Both the position numbers and the translations under genes were made by a program. This document shows, in pieces, positions 6,398 through 31,373 of a stretch of DNA of 64,000 nt. The stretch lies in the sequence record NC_070936.1; one strand, written 5' to 3'. The stretch's first letter is position 1, and each line of letters begins with the position of its first letter. Below the pieces are notes generated by a model. The model was given only the letters and a program-made list of their open reading frames with translations. It made no database searches and was not told the DNA's origin.

Positions 6398-6419
6398 TAG
6401 ATATTATTAGATTGAATAA
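6398..6419 (+). promoter_or_regulatory. Putative phage (early-type) promoter
   Basis: tagatattattagattgaataa matches the recurrent ATATTATY motif; resembles phiKZ early TATATTAC. Confidence 0.55.
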
Positions 6420-21536: not shown

Positions 21537-21559
21537 GTCTATATTATTAGAGTGTATAA
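21537..21559 (+). promoter_or_regulatory. Putative promoter of chmA
   Basis: gtctatattattagagtgtataa; near-identical to 31352-31373. Confidence 0.7.
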
Positions 21560-21624: not shown

Positions 21625-23541
21625 ATGTCTCTCGATAACAACATGAACGCAAATAACGCTCAATCTTCTTCTAACAACAACGCTGGTAAAAACACTATGT
21701 CTAATGCAAATCCACTGTTCGGCCTGCTGGGTGAAGCGAACCTGTTCTCTTCTACTCACTCCATCACTGAAGTAAAAGACATCCAGAAATCTCTGGAAGA
21801 AACCATTAAGTATCTGCAGAAGAACACTGCTTCTCAATCTCAGAAGCTGTCCCTCCCGACTCTGGTTCAGTCTATCACTTCCGACATCAGTTCTCAGCTG
21901 CCTGGCCTGACCATCTCCACTGTGATCAATGGCGTCCGTTATGTCATGCCGGTTCTGTTCTACAAAACTGGTGTAACCGAAGCTACAGAAGTGATCATGC
22001 TGGCTAACGAAAACATGCCGCGCGGTATTGCCAAAGTTCCTGCTTCCTTCATGAACAGCGAGCTGATGGAAAAGATCAAGTCTACTTCTGCATTCCACGA
22101 AGGTCAGCAGATGAAGAACGTTGTGATCGTAGCACCGTCTGTAGTTAACCTGGAAACCTTCATCAAGAACGCTGTCAAAGTTGAAGACGTTGTTCCTGAA
22201 GTTCGTACCAACCTGCTGAAAGAGTGGAACACTGCTCTGTACAACCTGGTTGTTCTGGAAGTAACTAAACAGGGTGTTGAATTCCCAACTCCGTTCAAAG
22301 ACGGTAAACTGTTCGGTAAAGACGATGCAGCTGTTGCGCGTATCGAGCCGGTAAACCGTGCTACCATCGACGGCAAACCAACTCCGTTCAACCTGGCGGT
22401 GAAACTGCACACCACCAATAAGAACAACACGCAGAACATGAACAGCAACAACACTCGTTCTATCTGCACCACTTATCTGAACGTATCTCTGGAAGCAATG
22501 TCTCAGCCTCAGTTCTTCCAGGCTCGTCAGCAGCGTCCAGGTCACAACGTCGGTCCTCTGGTTCCGGTAATCTCTACTGGTATCACTATCCCAGGCGAAA
22601 CCCTGAACAACAACAACTCCATGCTGACTGCTCTGCTGGGTCTGTACGCTTCTATCGGTGCAAACCAGATGCAGTTCTTCTCTGAAGCATTCCGTGGTAA
22701 AGAAGTTGGTCACCGTGGTAACATCGGTAACTTCAACAACTATCTGACTCAGATGCTGGGTAGCGCTTACGGCACCGCTCAGATGATCACTGATAAGAAC
22801 ATCACCAATGCAGCAGTTGTTAACCAGTGGCTGAACACCTACGTTGCTCCGAACGCAGTATACGTTCTGGATCTGGCATCCTTCACCGAAGACGTTTCTA
22901 ACTCCGACTTCTGGTGGAACATCATCGGTCAGCCGAATGGTTCTACTTACCATAAAGCTCTGATCAACCTGATGGACGTTCTGTCTAACAAAGCTTTCAG
23001 CCGCATCATCGCTGAGAACGCTGCAAAAGGTCAGAACCGTGATCCTCGTAAAGACTGGACTGCAGGTGATGCAATCCTGAAACCTACTCCGATCATGATG
23101 CCTGCTGGTATCGCTCGTGGTAAAGATGGGAAATGGTTCGACCTGGCAGAAGTTGACGGCATGTTCCTGCGTCAGGAAAACTACTACGGTCAAAACGAAC
23201 CAGCTGTTAATCAGTACCTGGGTCTTATCTGTGGCGCAACCGGTACCGATCCGAAAGCACGTCAGTATGCAATCTACAACCTGCTGAACCAACTGTTCGA
23301 TACCAACGTAATCATCGAAGGTTGGAAACGTCGCTTCGTATGGGAAGATGCATTCTTCAACACTGCAGCACGCGCAATGGCAACTGCTGGTGCAATGACC
23401 ATGTCCGCAAGCAACAACGTATCTGCTTGGACTGTTCAGCACAGCAACGACTACCTGAACTACACCATGTCTGCAGTTCTGCAGCAAGGTATGCAGGTTG
23501 GCGCAATGGGTGGCTTCTCTGGCGCCTACACCCACTACTAA
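21625..23541 (+). CDS. chmA: Chimallin, major nuclear shell protein (phiKZ gp54-like)
   Basis: 638 aa with extreme high-expression codon bias; immediately upstream of the nvRNAP beta-prime gene; disordered N-rich N-arm; aromatic C-terminal end. Confidence 0.9.
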   Translation: MSLDNNMNANNAQSSSNNNAGKNTMSNANPLFGLLGEANLFSSTHSITEVKDIQKSLEETIKYLQKNTASQSQKLSLPTLVQSITSDISSQLPGLTISTVINGVRYVMPVLFYKTGVTEATEVIMLANENMPRGIAKVPASFMNSELMEKIKSTSAFHEGQQMKNVVIVAPSVVNLETFIKNAVKVEDVVPEVRTNLLKEWNTALYNLVVLEVTKQGVEFPTPFKDGKLFGKDDAAVARIEPVNRATIDGKPTPFNLAVKLHTTNKNNTQNMNSNNTRSICTTYLNVSLEAMSQPQFFQARQQRPGHNVGPLVPVISTGITIPGETLNNNNSMLTALLGLYASIGANQMQFFSEAFRGKEVGHRGNIGNFNNYLTQMLGSAYGTAQMITDKNITNAAVVNQWLNTYVAPNAVYVLDLASFTEDVSNSDFWWNIIGQPNGSTYHKALINLMDVLSNKAFSRIIAENAAKGQNRDPRKDWTAGDAILKPTPIMMPAGIARGKDGKWFDLAEVDGMFLRQENYYGQNEPAVNQYLGLICGATGTDPKARQYAIYNLLNQLFDTNVIIEGWKRRFVWEDAFFNTAARAMATAGAMTMSASNNVSAWTVQHSNDYLNYTMSAVLQQGMQVGAMGGFSGAYTHY

Positions 23542-23637: not shown

Positions 23638-25227
23638 ATGTCAAGTATGGCAGATGTACTTAACAAATTCGCAGATGAACATATGGTTCCAAGTAAGCTT
23701 TTTGATGCAATGATAAAAGCTACAGGAATAGTACCACAGCAGGATGACCAGTCGTTCTATACCCCAATTTATCCAGACTTCATTGACTTCGATGAGAAAC
23801 ATGATCAGTCTATCACACCACCAATCTATCTGAATGACTTCGACTTTAATATCGAAGAAGATCGTCAGGCAATCATTGAACTACTACGTACAGAGTTCGA
23901 AGGGAACAACTTTGACACTGTAGCTTCTTGTAGTTGTAAGAAGTATCGTAGTAATGCGTATTTAGGTTCCGGCTTTGTTTGTGAAGTTTGTGGTCACGAA
24001 GTGGTTAAACCACTCACCAGTCGTATCGAAACAAAAGTATGGCTTAAACGTCCAGCTAAAGTAGCAGGGTTTATTAGTCCAGCTATTTATGCTGTGTTCT
24101 TCAGCAAACTGAATACCAAATCTCCTAAAGTTAACTTGGTTGACTATTGGGTCAATCCAGATATCCGAAATGAGAAACGGTTTAAAGACGGCAACAATAA
24201 CGCATTTAAAATCGCATGTAAAATCGAAGCATTCCGCGAAACTCTGAATATCCCATATGGGTATAATAGTTTCATCGAAAACATCGATCTTATCATCCGT
24301 AGCGCTATTGAAGCTGATGTTAGTAAAGTGCTGGATCTGACAGAACAAGATCGTCAGTATTATTCTGAGTTCTGGGACAAGTATCGTACTAAAGCAGTAT
24401 TCAAATATTTACCACTTCCAAACAAGATCACCACAGTAGTTGAGTCGGATCAACGAGATCGCTATGTTAATAAAGAACAAACCGATCTGGATAAAATCTA
24501 TTTCACTCTTGCCGACACATATCCTGAATATGATATCCGCGTAGATGAAAACGAAGATCTGATGGGTCGTAATCTGAAAGGTCTGGTAGATGCCCTGGCT
24601 GAAGTACAGAAGAACATTCTGTTCGGTAAGAAAGGGATGATCCGATATCACGCAGGTGCTGGTAAACTTCCATTTACTGGTCGTTCTATTATTACCGGTG
24701 AATCAGGTGTATGTCGTTCAGATACCATTATCCTTCCATGGATGTATGGATTAACTTGTCTGGATAAACACTTAACTTCCTGGTTGTATCGTAAAGGTTA
24801 TACACCGAAGAAAATCAAAGAGATAATCCGAACTGCGGCTCATGCTAAACTTCCGATTATTGAAGAATTCTATACCTGGATTGAAACCAATCGTTATGCA
24901 ATGGTAACGGCCGGTCGAAATCCATCAATCCAATATCTGTCTGCACGTGGGTTCTTTGTTAAGTTTAACCGGGACCTTGATGATAAGTCCATCCGTATTC
25001 CAATTACTACCGTAAAAGAATTCGGTGCTGACTTTGATGGCGATCAGATGTATGTGATCTTTATCCCAGATATGATGTCTAAAATTGAAGCATATTCTAG
25101 CTGGGGTCACCATCAGATGTTGGATCCTAATAAACCATTTAGAACTAGTCGTTTTGCAACGCACACCAAGACTAACCTGCTGAATATTAATTCGCTGTTT
25201 CTTGATGTTCCTATTGAGGAGGATTAA
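23638..25227 (+). CDS. Non-virion RNA polymerase beta-prime N-terminal subunit (phiKZ gp55-like)
   Basis: Zn-finger CSC..CEVCG, GKLPFTGRSII, GRNPSI, catalytic FGADFDGD. Confidence 0.92.
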   Translation: MSSMADVLNKFADEHMVPSKLFDAMIKATGIVPQQDDQSFYTPIYPDFIDFDEKHDQSITPPIYLNDFDFNIEEDRQAIIELLRTEFEGNNFDTVASCSCKKYRSNAYLGSGFVCEVCGHEVVKPLTSRIETKVWLKRPAKVAGFISPAIYAVFFSKLNTKSPKVNLVDYWVNPDIRNEKRFKDGNNNAFKIACKIEAFRETLNIPYGYNSFIENIDLIIRSAIEADVSKVLDLTEQDRQYYSEFWDKYRTKAVFKYLPLPNKITTVVESDQRDRYVNKEQTDLDKIYFTLADTYPEYDIRVDENEDLMGRNLKGLVDALAEVQKNILFGKKGMIRYHAGAGKLPFTGRSIITGESGVCRSDTIILPWMYGLTCLDKHLTSWLYRKGYTPKKIKEIIRTAAHAKLPIIEEFYTWIETNRYAMVTAGRNPSIQYLSARGFFVKFNRDLDDKSIRIPITTVKEFGADFDGDQMYVIFIPDMMSKIEAYSSWGHHQMLDPNKPFRTSRFATHTKTNLLNINSLFLDVPIEED

Positions 25228-25895
25228 TGCTAAATGCAACTAGCGCATTTACTCGTGCATGTAGCGGGTCTATGACAGATGCAAGTGCAGGTGCTTTTAA
25301 CACATTCATGAATGGGTTCTATGACAGATATCAGAACTTGAGTGGATGGTTGGGTGAAACTTTAAATACGGTAAAGGAAGCTCATAAGAACTTTATGGAT
25401 TCTCGTATGTGGGAATTCTCTAATCGTATCAATGGCAAAGACGGTCAGTATGTAGGTCGTTTTGAAATAGGTTATCTGTCCGAAGTTCAATATCAAAGAC
25501 AGGCAACTGGGTTCATGCGAGATTACATTATGGCTAACCCACTCTTGATGGATCTCTATCAGGAAGGGCGAGTTGATGGTTATGGTGGAGACTTTAGTGA
25601 CCTGTGTTCTGGAGTAGGTCGCGATAACTTCTATTATAACAAAGCCATCGACGGTAAGGTCATGTTTAATGAAGAAGAGAATACACTGAACCGAACTGTG
25701 TATACATCTTCTCGTGATTCCCTGACACACCTGACATTCTCCGAACGTGTTGATATCCATCGCACCTGGCAAGCTACTAACCTTCATATCGCAGCAAATC
25801 TGTTCGATCCGACTTCCATTATCGGTGACAACATTCTGAGTGTTGAAGAAGTAGAAGAACGTCGTCGTAAGTTAGAAGAAGAAAGTTCTGAATAA
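25227..25895 (+). CDS. Conserved chimallivirus core hypothetical protein (gp59-like)
   Basis: Coupled to the RNAP gene; YIMANP..LY..G..DGY pattern recalled from phiKZ-like phages. Confidence 0.6.
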   Translation: MLNATSAFTRACSGSMTDASAGAFNTFMNGFYDRYQNLSGWLGETLNTVKEAHKNFMDSRMWEFSNRINGKDGQYVGRFEIGYLSEVQYQRQATGFMRDYIMANPLLMDLYQEGRVDGYGGDFSDLCSGVGRDNFYYNKAIDGKVMFNEEENTLNRTVYTSSRDSLTHLTFSERVDIHRTWQATNLHIAANLFDPTSIIGDNILSVEEVEERRRKLEEESSE

Positions 25896-25902
25896 CTGAA
25901 AC

Positions 25903-25934
25903 AGCAATGGGGTGGAAACACCCTGTTGCTTTTA
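25903..25934 (+). terminator. Intrinsic terminator
   Basis: agcaatggggtg-gaaa-caccctgttgct followed by ttt. Confidence 0.7.
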
Positions 25935-25970
25935 TCAGGTTCTTATTTTTTTGTCTTCAAGAGTGCGTAA

Positions 25971-26396
25971 ATGGATATTGTAACTAAAGTTCATATCAAA
26001 GTTCCCATGATGTCTCGTTCTGAGGTAGAGTATCTCGTACTTAACAATCTAATCGATGATGAGGGTAATATGCAAGTATTTACTGACAACCTGGTCGTGG
26101 TCAAACGTAAAGCAGATGAAGTTAATAACTTTAAGATCTATAACCATTTCGGCCAGCGTATCGGTCGTGTCAATTTCCAGGATGGATTTGTAAATGAAGA
26201 AACTGGTGCCAATGGTTTGACTAACGAAGCATTGATTGCTATTACTTTGAATCGTCTCGAAAGTCAGAATAAAGGTAAGTTCAAGTCAATCCATAACGAT
26301 AAAGCCATCGAATGTTTACGTGGTGCTTTGGTAGCATTAAAGGATCGCGTAGATGACAGAATGGCTCGTGGTGTTTCTAACACTGATGCGGAGTAA
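25971..26396 (+). CDS. tad1: Tad1-family cyclic-nucleotide sponge (anti-Thoeris/anti-CBASS)
   Basis: [59 protein letters not shown] matches recalled Tad1 pattern IKFQKG..HGV..DLLEIVRDRL..FQ.GPFSSREN..AL..EEAL....RR..DR..R.V. Confidence 0.82.
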
Positions 26397-26864
26397 ATGA
26401 TGTCTAATTTTGGTTACTGTGAATTGCAGGTAGACCTTAACACCGGGATGAAGATTCAAAAGGCCATCGACTCTGCTGAAGTTGAACAACCTTTAGATCT
26501 CATCCCTGCTAACAAGCTTCACGCTACAATAATGTACGATGAGCGGAATCCTGATATCTTCCCTTCTAAATCTAATAAGGTTTACAAGGCTAAGGTTAAA
26601 GGCGTAAAGACATTAGGTGATCCTAATTCCAGATGGTACGCGGCAGCTTTGGTTCTGGAGTGCCCAGCAATACAAAGCCGTCATAAGCAACTACTGGATG
26701 AAGGTTTCAAACATTCTTATGACGACCTTCTGCTACACGTTTCATTATGCTACGGTAAAGACACAGATATTGTTGCACCACTATTGGAGAAATTGATGTC
26801 GGAAGGTAAGTTCCCTGACACCATTACTCTGTGCAATGAAACCTGGGAACACTGCGGCGACTAA
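26397..26864 (+). CDS. acb1: Acb1-family 2H phosphoesterase (anti-CBASS nuclease)
   Basis: Two HxT/S motifs, IPANKLHATIMY and LVLE...SRH.....G..HSYDD...HVSLCY, aligning with T4 Acb1 (57B) VPREKIHSTICY and LVLD...CRH.....G..HDFDDYTPHITLSY. Confidence 0.85.
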   Translation: MMSNFGYCELQVDLNTGMKIQKAIDSAEVEQPLDLIPANKLHATIMYDERNPDIFPSKSNKVYKAKVKGVKTLGDPNSRWYAAALVLECPAIQSRHKQLLDEGFKHSYDDLLLHVSLCYGKDTDIVAPLLEKLMSEGKFPDTITLCNETWEHCGD

Positions 26865-26942: not shown

Positions 26943-26965
26943 GACCTATATTACTTAAGTGATAA
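26943..26965 (+). promoter_or_regulatory. Putative early promoter
   Basis: gacctatattacttaagtgataa contains exact TATATTAC. Confidence 0.7.
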
Positions 26966-27009: not shown

Positions 27010-27177
27010 ATGTTCTTCAACAGCCCACATGACTCAGTAGTAATCGGTTCTGCATTCTTCAGCGGTGTTGGTGTACTGGTATTCGGTACTGCTGCATACT
27101 ACGGTATCAAGGCAGCTATCATTCAGTTCATCAATAGCCGTGAAGCAAACCGCCCAATGGCTACTCGCAATAAATAA
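27010..27177 (+). CDS. 55 aa single-pass membrane protein with its own promoter and terminator
   Basis: gagag RBS; TM SVVIGSAFFSGVGVLVFGTAAYYGI; high-expression codons. Confidence 0.7.
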   Translation: MFFNSPHDSVVIGSAFFSGVGVLVFGTAAYYGIKAAIIQFINSREANRPMATRNK

Positions 27178-27180
27178 GTC

Positions 27181-27217
27181 ATAACCAGGATCTCCCCTAA
27201 CCGGGAGATCCTGTTAT
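27181..27217 (+). terminator. Stem-loop terminator
   Basis: ataaccaggatctccc-ctaacc-gggagatcctgttat. Confidence 0.75.
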
Positions 27218-27280: not shown

Positions 27281-27688
27281 ATGTCTAAAGGTGTAGTAGG
27301 AACTATGGATACGGTAGGATTTATTACCGAACCCACTATCAAGATAGATAGACTCATTGCATATTGGTTTGCTAACCGAATTGACCAATGTTTGATCTTA
27401 AGAAATATTCACTCTTATCAGTATGTCATCGCTAAACACCAGGATGATAAAAAGAGTGAAGAACGGTTACTGGCGGATATAGAAAATAACCTGCGTGAGT
27501 ATCTACTGGAATGTTTCGAAGGTTGCTCTGTTAGTGCTTGGGCGAAACGTGAAAATCCTGGTGACAAGATGTTTACCTTGGTTCTGTCTGGAACAGTCTT
27601 CCAAGACGGCAAGGAATACGATCTTGCAAAATCTGTACTGATTAACGGCAGTACATACGAACTCATTGATAAAGGACGTGGTGGTTGA
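27281..27688 (+). CDS. Conserved chimallivirus core hypothetical protein
   Basis: gagga RBS; position in the core block upstream of SbcD. Confidence 0.65.
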   Translation: MSKGVVGTMDTVGFITEPTIKIDRLIAYWFANRIDQCLILRNIHSYQYVIAKHQDDKKSEERLLADIENNLREYLLECFEGCSVSAWAKRENPGDKMFTLVLSGTVFQDGKEYDLAKSVLINGSTYELIDKGRGG

Positions 27689-31351: not shown

Positions 31352-31373
31352 CAGATATTATTAGAGTGTATAA
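31352..31373 (+). promoter_or_regulatory. Putative promoter
   Basis: cagatattattagagtgtataa. Confidence 0.7.

Follow-up and report, generated by a model that had tools for sequence, protein, structure and literature searches.

Two adjacent genes of the Klebsiella phage N1M2, N1M2_39 and N1M2_40, encode by sequence and predicted fold a Tad1-family protein and an Acb1-family 2H phosphodiesterase, and we propose, with a probability of about 0.65, that the pair is a lineage-specific, co-expressed anti-signalling unit acting in the cytoplasm of the host. The genes lie at positions 25971–26864 of a stretch of 64,000 nucleotides from the sequence record NC_070936.1, which we call the window and which is identical to bases 1–64000 of the N1M2 genome (MN642089.1, 253 kb, genus Nimduovirus). 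Order and adjacency of the two genes are kept in at least 17 phages, the two are fused into a single open reading frame (ORF) in six further genomes, and both are under purifying selection. The N1M2 cassette is made up of the following elements:

25971–26396, plus strand: Tad1-like gene N1M2_39, 141 amino acids (aa), deposited under the name 'ABC transporter ATPase'.
26390–26393, plus strand: GGAG, a Shine–Dalgarno-like motif for the Acb1-like gene, read from the sequence and overlapping the final codons of the Tad1-like gene.
26397–26864, plus strand: Acb1-like 2H phosphodiesterase gene N1M2_40, 155 aa (154 aa when started at 26400), deposited as 'RNA ligase'.

The junction of the two genes (26390–26402) reads GGAG TAA ATG ATG. 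The original prediction for this locus, made from the sequence alone, had described the pair as following each other with zero spacing, and the upstream stop codon indeed abuts the ATG at 26397. However, since the GenBank start of N1M2_40 is the second ATG at 26400 and the close homologues of the protein open with MSNFGY, that is with a single methionine, the N1M2 spacer probably has a length of 3 nt and not of 0; the relatives have spacers of 1–9 nt. The GGAG is found 3 nt before the ATG at 26397 and 6 nt before the ATG at 26400, and we regard it as the putative ribosome-binding site of the Acb1-like gene. Whichever ATG is used, this site lies inside the upstream gene.

The assignment of N1M2_39 was obtained with several independent searches. 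A profile search places the protein in phrog_2428 (E 2.6e-20), which is also matched by the founding Tad1 of the Bacillus phage SBSphiJ7 (8e-47) and by the validated gp184 of phiKZ (3e-18). With phmmer against the sequences of the PDB it matches CmTad1 (8kbb, E 4.8e-7) and CbTad1 (7uav, E 1.2e-6), and tblastn relates it to SBSphiJ7 Tad1 (E 4e-7). The Tad1-like family comprises 1,235 cluster representatives at E≤0.001. An AlphaFold2 model calculated from a 78-sequence alignment (predicted local distance difference test, pLDDT, 92.6) shows a four-stranded sheet (strands 33–69) followed by two long helices (85–99 and 107–132). When this model was compared with the PDB by Foldseek all of the best 20 matches were Tad1 structures (probability 1.00, E 2e-7 to 2e-4), with template modelling (TM) scores of 0.64–0.74 which reach at least 0.70 in 17 of the 20, and the best match outside Tad1 had an E-value of 0.23. 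A PADLOC and NCBIfam search returned a chance-level match to Cap12 as its sole result (15 bits, cut-off 450).

For the residue comparison the functional residues given in a preprint (PMC10680739) were placed on HMMER alignments. The CbTad1 residues N92, R109, and R113, which line the pocket for glycocyclic ADP-ribose (gcADPR) and cyclic dinucleotides, correspond to N109, R126, and R130 in N1M2_39. Among 78 family members R130 is invariant and N109 and R126 are nearly so, and the family-wide FQxG and NG motifs are likewise retained in the stand-alone N1M2_39. Membership in the Tad1 family is supported by sequence, predicted fold, and key residues, and as these three pocket residues and both motifs are kept, they point to ligand binding being retained in the stand-alone form.

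The conserved core of N1M2_39 begins at M34 (ATG at 26070, with GAGGG 4 nt upstream), and many relatives start at the equivalent of this methionine. Residues 1–33 (25971–26069) form an extra extension of two helices which evolves fast and is only 24% identical between N1M2 and its close relative, the Serratia phage Yubaba, while the remaining locus is ~90% identical. Because the extension is so diverged between these two phages, the start codon can be either 25971 or 26070. The ratio of nonsynonymous to synonymous substitution rates (dN/dS) between N1M2 and Yubaba is ~0.86, almost neutral, over the first 37 codons and 0.17 over the C-terminal 75; for the complete Tad1-like protein, which is 65% identical overall, it is 0.44.

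We also noted that the helical half of N1M2_39 (window 25971–26393) gives weak sequence matches to leucine-rich-repeat 'repebody' and internalin constructs (E 0.005–0.5), and two very long repeat proteins (P0108 and P0149) were matched as well in the search of representatives. We take these matches as compositional similarity and not as homology. Among metagenomic proteins the Tad1-family domain also occurs fused to an RyR domain (P0150) or to a replication-initiation-like domain (P0080), and unassigned extensions of ~110 aa are found as well in this set of fused proteins (P0150, P0080, P0165, P0126, and P0131).

For N1M2_40 the defining features of Acb1 were taken from the literature (PMC9117128). 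The protein reaches 54.3 bits with PF23474, the Pfam model of Acb1, whose cut-off is 27 bits (E 1.6e-14), it matches phrog_755 (E 2.7e-27), and all 43 of its 43 close homologues carry a precomputed PF23474 assignment. The two histidine motifs H42-A-T44 and H114-V-S116 are invariant in alignments of 22 and 36 homologues and align with those of the structures 7t26 and 9q2g; serine in place of threonine in the second motif is usual among 2H enzymes (PMC5283653). Y7 and W150 are invariant too and W80 is nearly so. The sequence alignment does not put these three residues on Y12, W74, F107, and W147, which belong to the C-terminal lid and the base-stacking aromatics in the enzyme of the Erwinia phage FBB1, and their positions are plausible. 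In the AlphaFold2 model (pLDDT 93.4) only six residues precede the first strand. Foldseek ranks 1–5 are taken by 9q2y, 9q2g, 7t26, and 7t27 (E 7e-9 to 3e-6), the best matches being the 2H phosphodiesterase PDE-9 of BCSR5 (9q2y/9q2g, E 7e-9) and FBB1 Acb1 (7t26, E 4e-7). Sequence, predicted fold, and key residues support N1M2_40 as a 2H phosphodiesterase of the Acb1 family. Between N1M2 and Yubaba it is 88% identical with a dN/dS of 0.12, so that this gene as well as the C-terminal half of the Tad1-like gene (0.17) is under purifying selection. Both family calls of the original prediction, a Tad1-like sponge and an Acb1-like 2H phosphoesterase, are borne out by these data, including the comparison with Tad1 and Acb1 structures that it had proposed, in which the best matches are Tad1 for N1M2_39 and the Acb1 group for N1M2_40.

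In the Serratia phage BF (357 kb) a homologue of the Acb1-like gene is found among genes of the nicotinamide adenine dinucleotide (NAD) salvage type (L020:5535–11394). Its neighbours encode a nicotinamide phosphoribosyltransferase, a bifunctional nicotinamide mononucleotide adenylyltransferase/ADP-ribose pyrophosphatase, a Sir2-like protein, and a Nudix hydrolase, and the locus looks like an island of NAD-salvage and anti-defence genes.

Independent support for the two genes working as one unit comes from their distribution. With tblastn we found the Tad1-like gene directly followed by the Acb1-like gene in no fewer than 17 phages which infect five host genera (Klebsiella, Serratia, Pseudomonas, Shewanella, and Aeromonas), namely N1M2, Sureiya, Yubaba, OBP, the Shewanella phage SXP01, and twelve Aeromonas jumbo phages. 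The adjacency holds from the Klebsiella to the Aeromonas phages although the protein identity goes down to ~40–45%. Furthermore, a single fused ORF of 240–245 aa is present in the Erwinia phage AH04 (gp67), the Kosakonia phage Kc263, and four IMG/VR genomes. There is no stop codon between the two parts and the former start methionine is still present at the joint. With the gene order shared by at least 17 genomes and the genes fused in six more, the adjacency is far above chance.

Among the 43 nearest protein clusters of N1M2_40, 16 are of fused length (224–245 aa), and the Tad1-like N-terminal domain was present in all five of the five fused-length clusters that were read. The family hidden Markov model (HMM) of the Tad1-like proteins gives the fused N-terminal domains only 13–25 bits, and recognizing the homology needed a profile–profile comparison, in which the fused domain matches the stand-alone Tad1-like proteins with a probability of 98% (hhalign, E 2e-13). 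In ten pairwise comparisons within the AH04 subclade dN/dS is 0.09–0.25 for the fused N-terminal domain and 0.06–0.12 for the nuclease domain, with synonymous rates near saturation and with values that rest on pairs within this subclade and not on Kc263. In a tree of three flanking proteins the genomes with the fused gene form one clade (support 97) and the genomes that possess the nuclease gene only form another (support 100). The simplest history is an ancestral pair of separate genes followed by one fusion and one loss.

From these observations we infer the following mode of action, with respect to ligands, substrates, timing of expression, and benefit for the phage. The tight junction with a Shine–Dalgarno sequence in the upstream gene would allow both products to be made from one mRNA, and they would act in the host cytoplasm, beyond the protection of the chimallin shell. 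Signalling defences such as NucC still reach nucleus-forming phages (PMC13282480). The ligands of Tad1 are gcADPR, cyclic dinucleotides, and cyclic trinucleotides, and Acb1 does not cut 3'2'-cyclic GMP-AMP (3'2'-cGAMP; PMC10680739). The Tad1-like product would most likely bind, in a pocket at the dimer interface, the gcADPR made by Toll/interleukin-1 receptor (TIR) proteins of the Thoeris system and some cyclic dinucleotides, including isomers such as 3'2'-cGAMP which Acb1 leaves uncut. Cyclic trinucleotides would probably not be bound because other residues have taken the place of those that form the respective site and the hexamer interface. Acb1 acts on cyclic di- and trinucleotides that contain adenosine and have 3'-5' linkages (PMC9117128), and the Acb1-like product would most likely linearise messengers of this kind. 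Among its substrates would be cyclic triadenylate (cA3), the activator of NucC in the antiphage signalling system based on cyclic oligonucleotides (CBASS) and in type III CRISPR. Sponge and nuclease would in this way cover complementary sets of messengers, and as the site for cyclic trinucleotides is missing from the sponge, cA3 would have to be dealt with by the nuclease alone.

A number of observations weigh against this proposal. The CbTad1 residue F82 is not kept in N1M2_39, where Q99 takes its place; alanine or tyrosine occurs at this position in other family members including phiKZ gp184. The residues of the cyclic-trinucleotide site and of the hexamer interface (R90 and T97 in CbTad1; Q98, E99, M102, W103, and K106 in CmTad1) are all replaced, the equivalents in N1M2_39 being I107, E114, R117, G118, V121, A122, and D125. 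The oligomeric state and the ligand range of N1M2_39 may therefore differ from those of the known Tad1 proteins. This site and this interface are, though, a trait of some characterised Tad1 proteins and no condition of family membership. The original prediction had credited the sponge with some of the cyclic oligonucleotides of CBASS, a claim that is narrowed by these replacements to gcADPR and, as far as the residues tell, the cyclic dinucleotides. The Pfam model of the Acb2/Tad1 hairpin, PF24729, does not match N1M2_39 at E≤10. As this model likewise misses the validated phiKZ gp184, and another family member scores below its cut-off, we regard the miss as weak and uninformative evidence. 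The 2H phosphodiesterases of the Acb1 structural group vary in their substrate range (10.1101/2025.08.21.671373), and therefore the substrates of N1M2_40 cannot be read from its fold. A scan for sigma-70 promoters found none upstream of the cassette, and in the phages pEt-SU and Survivor the Acb1-like gene is present without a Tad1-like gene. Finally, the N-terminal domain of the fused proteins lacks the FQxG loop and the equivalent of R126, and the Kc263 type lacks N109 as well. Because this domain has no pocket and yet is under purifying selection, it hints at a role for which the canonical pocket is not needed. The further claim of the original prediction, marked there as inference, that the two proteins work as one unit gains support from the synteny in five host genera and from the natural fusion. 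As the fused proteins no longer have an intact canonical pocket, the fusion alone is no proof that signals are sequestered and then destroyed.

The fused proteins are also the starting point of the main rival explanation, according to which the Tad1-like part would be a physical partner of the nuclease, that is a capture, oligomerisation, or regulatory module, instead of an independent sponge. The pair would then be a two-subunit signal-destroying enzyme which has become single-chain in the AH04/Kc263 clade. Such a role would agree with the six natural fusions and the close clusters of fused length (16 of 43), with the selective constraint on a domain whose canonical pocket residues are gone and with a pairing that is positionally obligate across five host genera. 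It agrees less well with the stand-alone form, which retains N109, R126, R130, FQxG, and NG, with Acb1 having been described as a monomer that needs no partner (10.1101/2025.07.12.664507), and with pEt-SU and Survivor, where the nuclease is alone. On balance we consider this explanation unlikely. The same holds for the more specific scenario in which a Tad1-family domain turned into a module for capture or oligomerisation, by which an Acb1-type nuclease is fed or organised, at first as a translationally coupled partner and later within one polypeptide. If true, this sponge–nuclease hybrid would be an anti-signalling machine of a so far undescribed type.

Another explanation concerns the position of the pair in the genome. 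The cassette is located 2.4 kb downstream of the chimallin gene and has the following neighbours:

21625–23541, plus strand: chimallin, the nuclear shell protein (N1M2_36; phrog_4795, E 1.9e-127).
23638–25227, plus strand: beta'-like subunit of the non-virion RNA polymerase (nvRNAP), homologue of phiKZ gp55 (N1M2_37; phrog_2987, E 6e-146; Pfam RNA_pol_Rpb1_2; BLASTP with gp55, E 7e-29).
25227–25895, plus strand: gene 38, homologue of phiKZ gp59 (phrog_3254; BLASTP with gp59, E 3.6e-17).
25896–25938, plus strand: terminator-like hairpin in the gap between gene 38 and the cassette, with a 12-bp core stem (25903–25930) followed by UUUUAU.
27010–27177, plus strand: N1M2_41, a small hydrophobic protein of 55 aa, encoded just 3' of the Acb1-like gene in most relatives.
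27281–27688, plus strand: gene 42, homologue of phiKZ gp62 (phrog_3294; BLASTP with gp62, E 5e-4).

A BLASTP comparison of N1M2_36 with phiKZ gp54 was not significant, and the chimallin assignment therefore rests on the profile match and on synteny. Local searches gave one gene order at 14 loci, namely chmA (chimallin), nvRNAP, gene 38, the Tad1-like gene (where present), the Acb1-like gene, genes 41, 42, and 43, and SbcD. The full order including the Tad1-like gene was read in N1M2, Yubaba, OBP, SXP01, PS1, and D3, the coordinates agree with it in Sureiya, and in 10 further Aeromonas phages the adjacent pair alone was established. Gene 38 is the sole gene between the nvRNAP subunit and the cassette and forms the left border of a variable slot, whose right border is gene 42, with SbcD farther downstream. 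The flanking proteins of N1M2 and Yubaba are 88–98% identical and the neighbouring genes have dN/dS values of 0.02–0.12.

In phiKZ the slot between gp59 and gp62 is occupied by the unrelated genes gp60 and gp61 (111 and 154 aa; phrog_26086 and phrog_25720; L016:2670–3456). Given their similar size and position we considered them as diverged homologues of the Tad1-like and Acb1-like genes, and neither HMM nor BLASTP comparisons revealed any similarity. The original prediction had placed the cassette inside the core block of the phage nucleus, next to chmA and the nvRNAP gene. The location holds true on the profile match of chimallin and the BLASTP match to gp55, but since the phiKZ slot is unrelated and pEt-SU and Survivor do not have the Tad1-like gene, the cassette itself does not belong to the core of the chimalliviruses. 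When phiKZ gp184 was used in tblastn, the matches listed included no phage of Klebsiella, Serratia, or Aeromonas, and no phiKZ-type phage was among the 60 matches listed for N1M2_39. An Acb1-like gene was found within 4 kb at one of 15 Tad1-family loci in IMG/VR, the OBP locus alone. Judged by these searches the Tad1–Acb1 pairing is specific to this lineage.

It could be argued from the variability of the slot that the pair merely consists of two unrelated accessory genes sharing an 'anti-defence islet', and that the messengers concerned may be other than those of Thoeris and CBASS. The different content of the slot in phiKZ and an extra gene of 347 aa which precedes the pair in PS1 would fit, as would the fast evolution of the Tad1-like gene (dN/dS 0.44 against 0.02–0.12 of its neighbours), its loss on one occasion, and the varying substrate ranges of the Acb1 group (10.1101/2025.08.21.671373). 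Mere co-location is, however, hard to reconcile with adjacency, order, and 1–9 nt spacers that persist from the Aeromonas to the Klebsiella phages at ~40–45% identity, and with a fusion that arose and persisted, and we find this explanation unlikely. By their position phiKZ gp60 and gp61 are candidates for anti-defence genes, and if the sponge–nuclease hybrid described above is real, the slot between the gp59-like and the gp62-like gene would be a general anti-defence site.

Least convincing, and to our mind very improbable, is a LigT-type RNA-repair or 2',3'-cyclic phosphodiesterase (CPDase) role of the Acb1-like gene for cytoplasmic phage mRNA or tRNA with an incidental Tad1-like neighbour: the 2H fold and the HxT/HxS motifs are common to LigT and CPDases, N1M2_40 has a weak match to the 2',5' RNA ligase family (2_5_RNA_ligase2, E 0.037), LigT-type structures follow from Foldseek rank 6 on (E≥1e-4), and the mRNAs of chimalliviruses are exposed in the cytoplasm (PMC13282480), but that match reaches only 14.5 bits against 54 for the Acb1 family, the E-values of the Acb1-group folds are 3–5 orders of magnitude better, a partner kinase or ligase is not encoded nearby, the gene adjoins a Tad1-family domain to which it is fused in one clade, and the BF homologue is surrounded by NAD-salvage, Sir2-like, and Nudix genes. 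On the family and fold scores a role of the 2H enzyme in RNA repair is unlikely.

Turning again to the proposed co-expressed unit, we inspected its surroundings for transcription signals. The hairpin upstream of the cassette (25896–25938) has a calculated folding energy of −25.7 kcal/mol (z −3.69), and one of 200 shuffled sequences folds as well; it is a candidate terminator or attenuator. A second, strong terminator-like hairpin follows N1M2_41 (27186–27213), and N1M2_41 may belong to the same transcription unit as the cassette. tblastn matches to N1M2_41 were found in OBP, Kc263, AH04, D3, SXP01, Survivor, Yubaba, and one IMG/VR genome. Two motifs were tried and dropped: the window shows no enrichment of the phiKZ early-promoter word TATATTAC (2 occurrences, 2.7 expected) or of a T-rich motif found after hairpins, TTATTTTTTTG (7 occurrences, 4.2 expected). 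The 19-mer ATATTATTAGAGTGTATAA is a candidate phage promoter. Identical copies of it are located 5' of chimallin (21541–21559) and 5' of N1M2_47 (31355–31373), and a third copy with 2 mismatches lies at 6401–6419, which makes 3 matches where 0.08 are expected. A looser version, TATATTACTTAAGTGATAA, is present between the Acb1-like gene and gene 41 (26946–26964). Directly upstream of the cassette there is no word of the ATATTATTAGAGTGTATAA type.

The neighbouring nvRNAP gene showed a peculiarity in two of the relatives. In the Aeromonas phages PS1 (L005:1874–3508) and D3 (L006:4424–4733) the gp55-like gene is split into two in-frame pieces. Those of PS1 are ~1.6 kb apart with a gene for an HNH endonuclease between them, and the interruption looks like an intron-type insertion.

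Both protein families, the presence of Tad1 in phiKZ, and fusions of two sponges are already known (10.1101/2025.07.12.664507), and one deposited Aeromonas phage record names the pair 'immune evasion protein' and 'nuclease'. Our literature search found no description of a conserved Tad1–Acb1 pair, of its position beside chmA, or of a Tad1–Acb1 fusion. N1M2, OBP, and their relatives are not listed in the accessible part of the supplements to the Acb1 paper, and the N1M2 genome paper discusses neither gene of the cassette. According to a 2026 review no anti-defence protein has been described in jumbo phages apart from the Tad1 that phiKZ injects, and immunity of the cA3/NucC type has been documented to endanger phages that form a nucleus (PMC13282480). 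These phages are shielded from DNA-targeting defences and exposed to defences that work with small-molecule alarm signals. The N1M2 locus would be a second solution to this problem besides the phiKZ Tad1, with an expressed Tad1-family protein and an Acb1-family nuclease near the shell gene, and it offers a direct candidate for a gene set that confers resistance to immunity of the cA3/NucC type, where these phages are known to be vulnerable. With its three states (separate genes, fused genes, and nuclease gene only) it constitutes a natural experiment on how sponge and nuclease cooperate with or replace each other, and the cassette is relevant for choosing and understanding therapeutic jumbo phages.

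Compared with the known Tad1 proteins (SBSphiJ7; CbTad1, 7UAV/7UAW/8SMD; CmTad1, 8KBB), N1M2_39 belongs to the same PHROG, has the beta-sheet with two C-terminal helices, and keeps FQxG, NG, and the pocket equivalents N109, R126, and R130. It differs in being only ~25% identical to the solved structures, in its extra N-terminal extension of two helices, in the change of F82 to Q, and in its replaced trinucleotide and hexamer residues together with the missing PF24729 match, and unlike other Tad1 genes its gene adjoins a gene of the Acb1 family. Like phiKZ gp184 it is a Tad1-family protein of a jumbo phage that forms a nucleus, and both lack equivalents of CbTad1 R90 and T97. However, gp184 has 230 aa with an N-terminal capsid anchor, is encoded at another locus (198 kb), and is injected with the virion, whereas N1M2_39 is a free product of 141 aa encoded beside chmA and necessarily expressed after infection.

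Similarly, N1M2_40 shares with Acb1 (T4 gene 57B; FBB1, 7T26/7T27) the Pfam family, the 2H fold, the His-x-Thr/Ser pairs, and about the same length, and its C-terminal strand carries an invariant tryptophan at a plausible position for the lid tryptophan of Acb1. It is only 16–18% identical to the solved structures, its second motif is H-V-S and not H-x-T, and it is situated in the putative early-gene block of a chimallivirus, paired or fused with a Tad1-like domain. Its best structural match is the PDE-9 of the Burkholderia phage BCSR5 (9Q2G/9Q2Y; E 7e-9, TM 0.74–0.78), which is grouped by structure with T4 Acb1 (10.1101/2025.08.21.671373). PDE-9 has an N-terminal lid and spares 2'3'-cyclic di-AMP; as only six residues precede the first strand in the model of N1M2_40, a lid of this type is unlikely there. 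As to the joining of two anti-signalling modules, the locus resembles the sponge–sponge fusions, such as Acb4–Tad2 of the Pasteurella phage Pm86 and the Sequestin fusions, which block more than one messenger (10.1101/2025.07.12.664507). In those proteins two sponges are combined, whereas the partner of the sponge-family domain in the present locus is a nuclease, and the pocket of the sponge has decayed where the two are fused.

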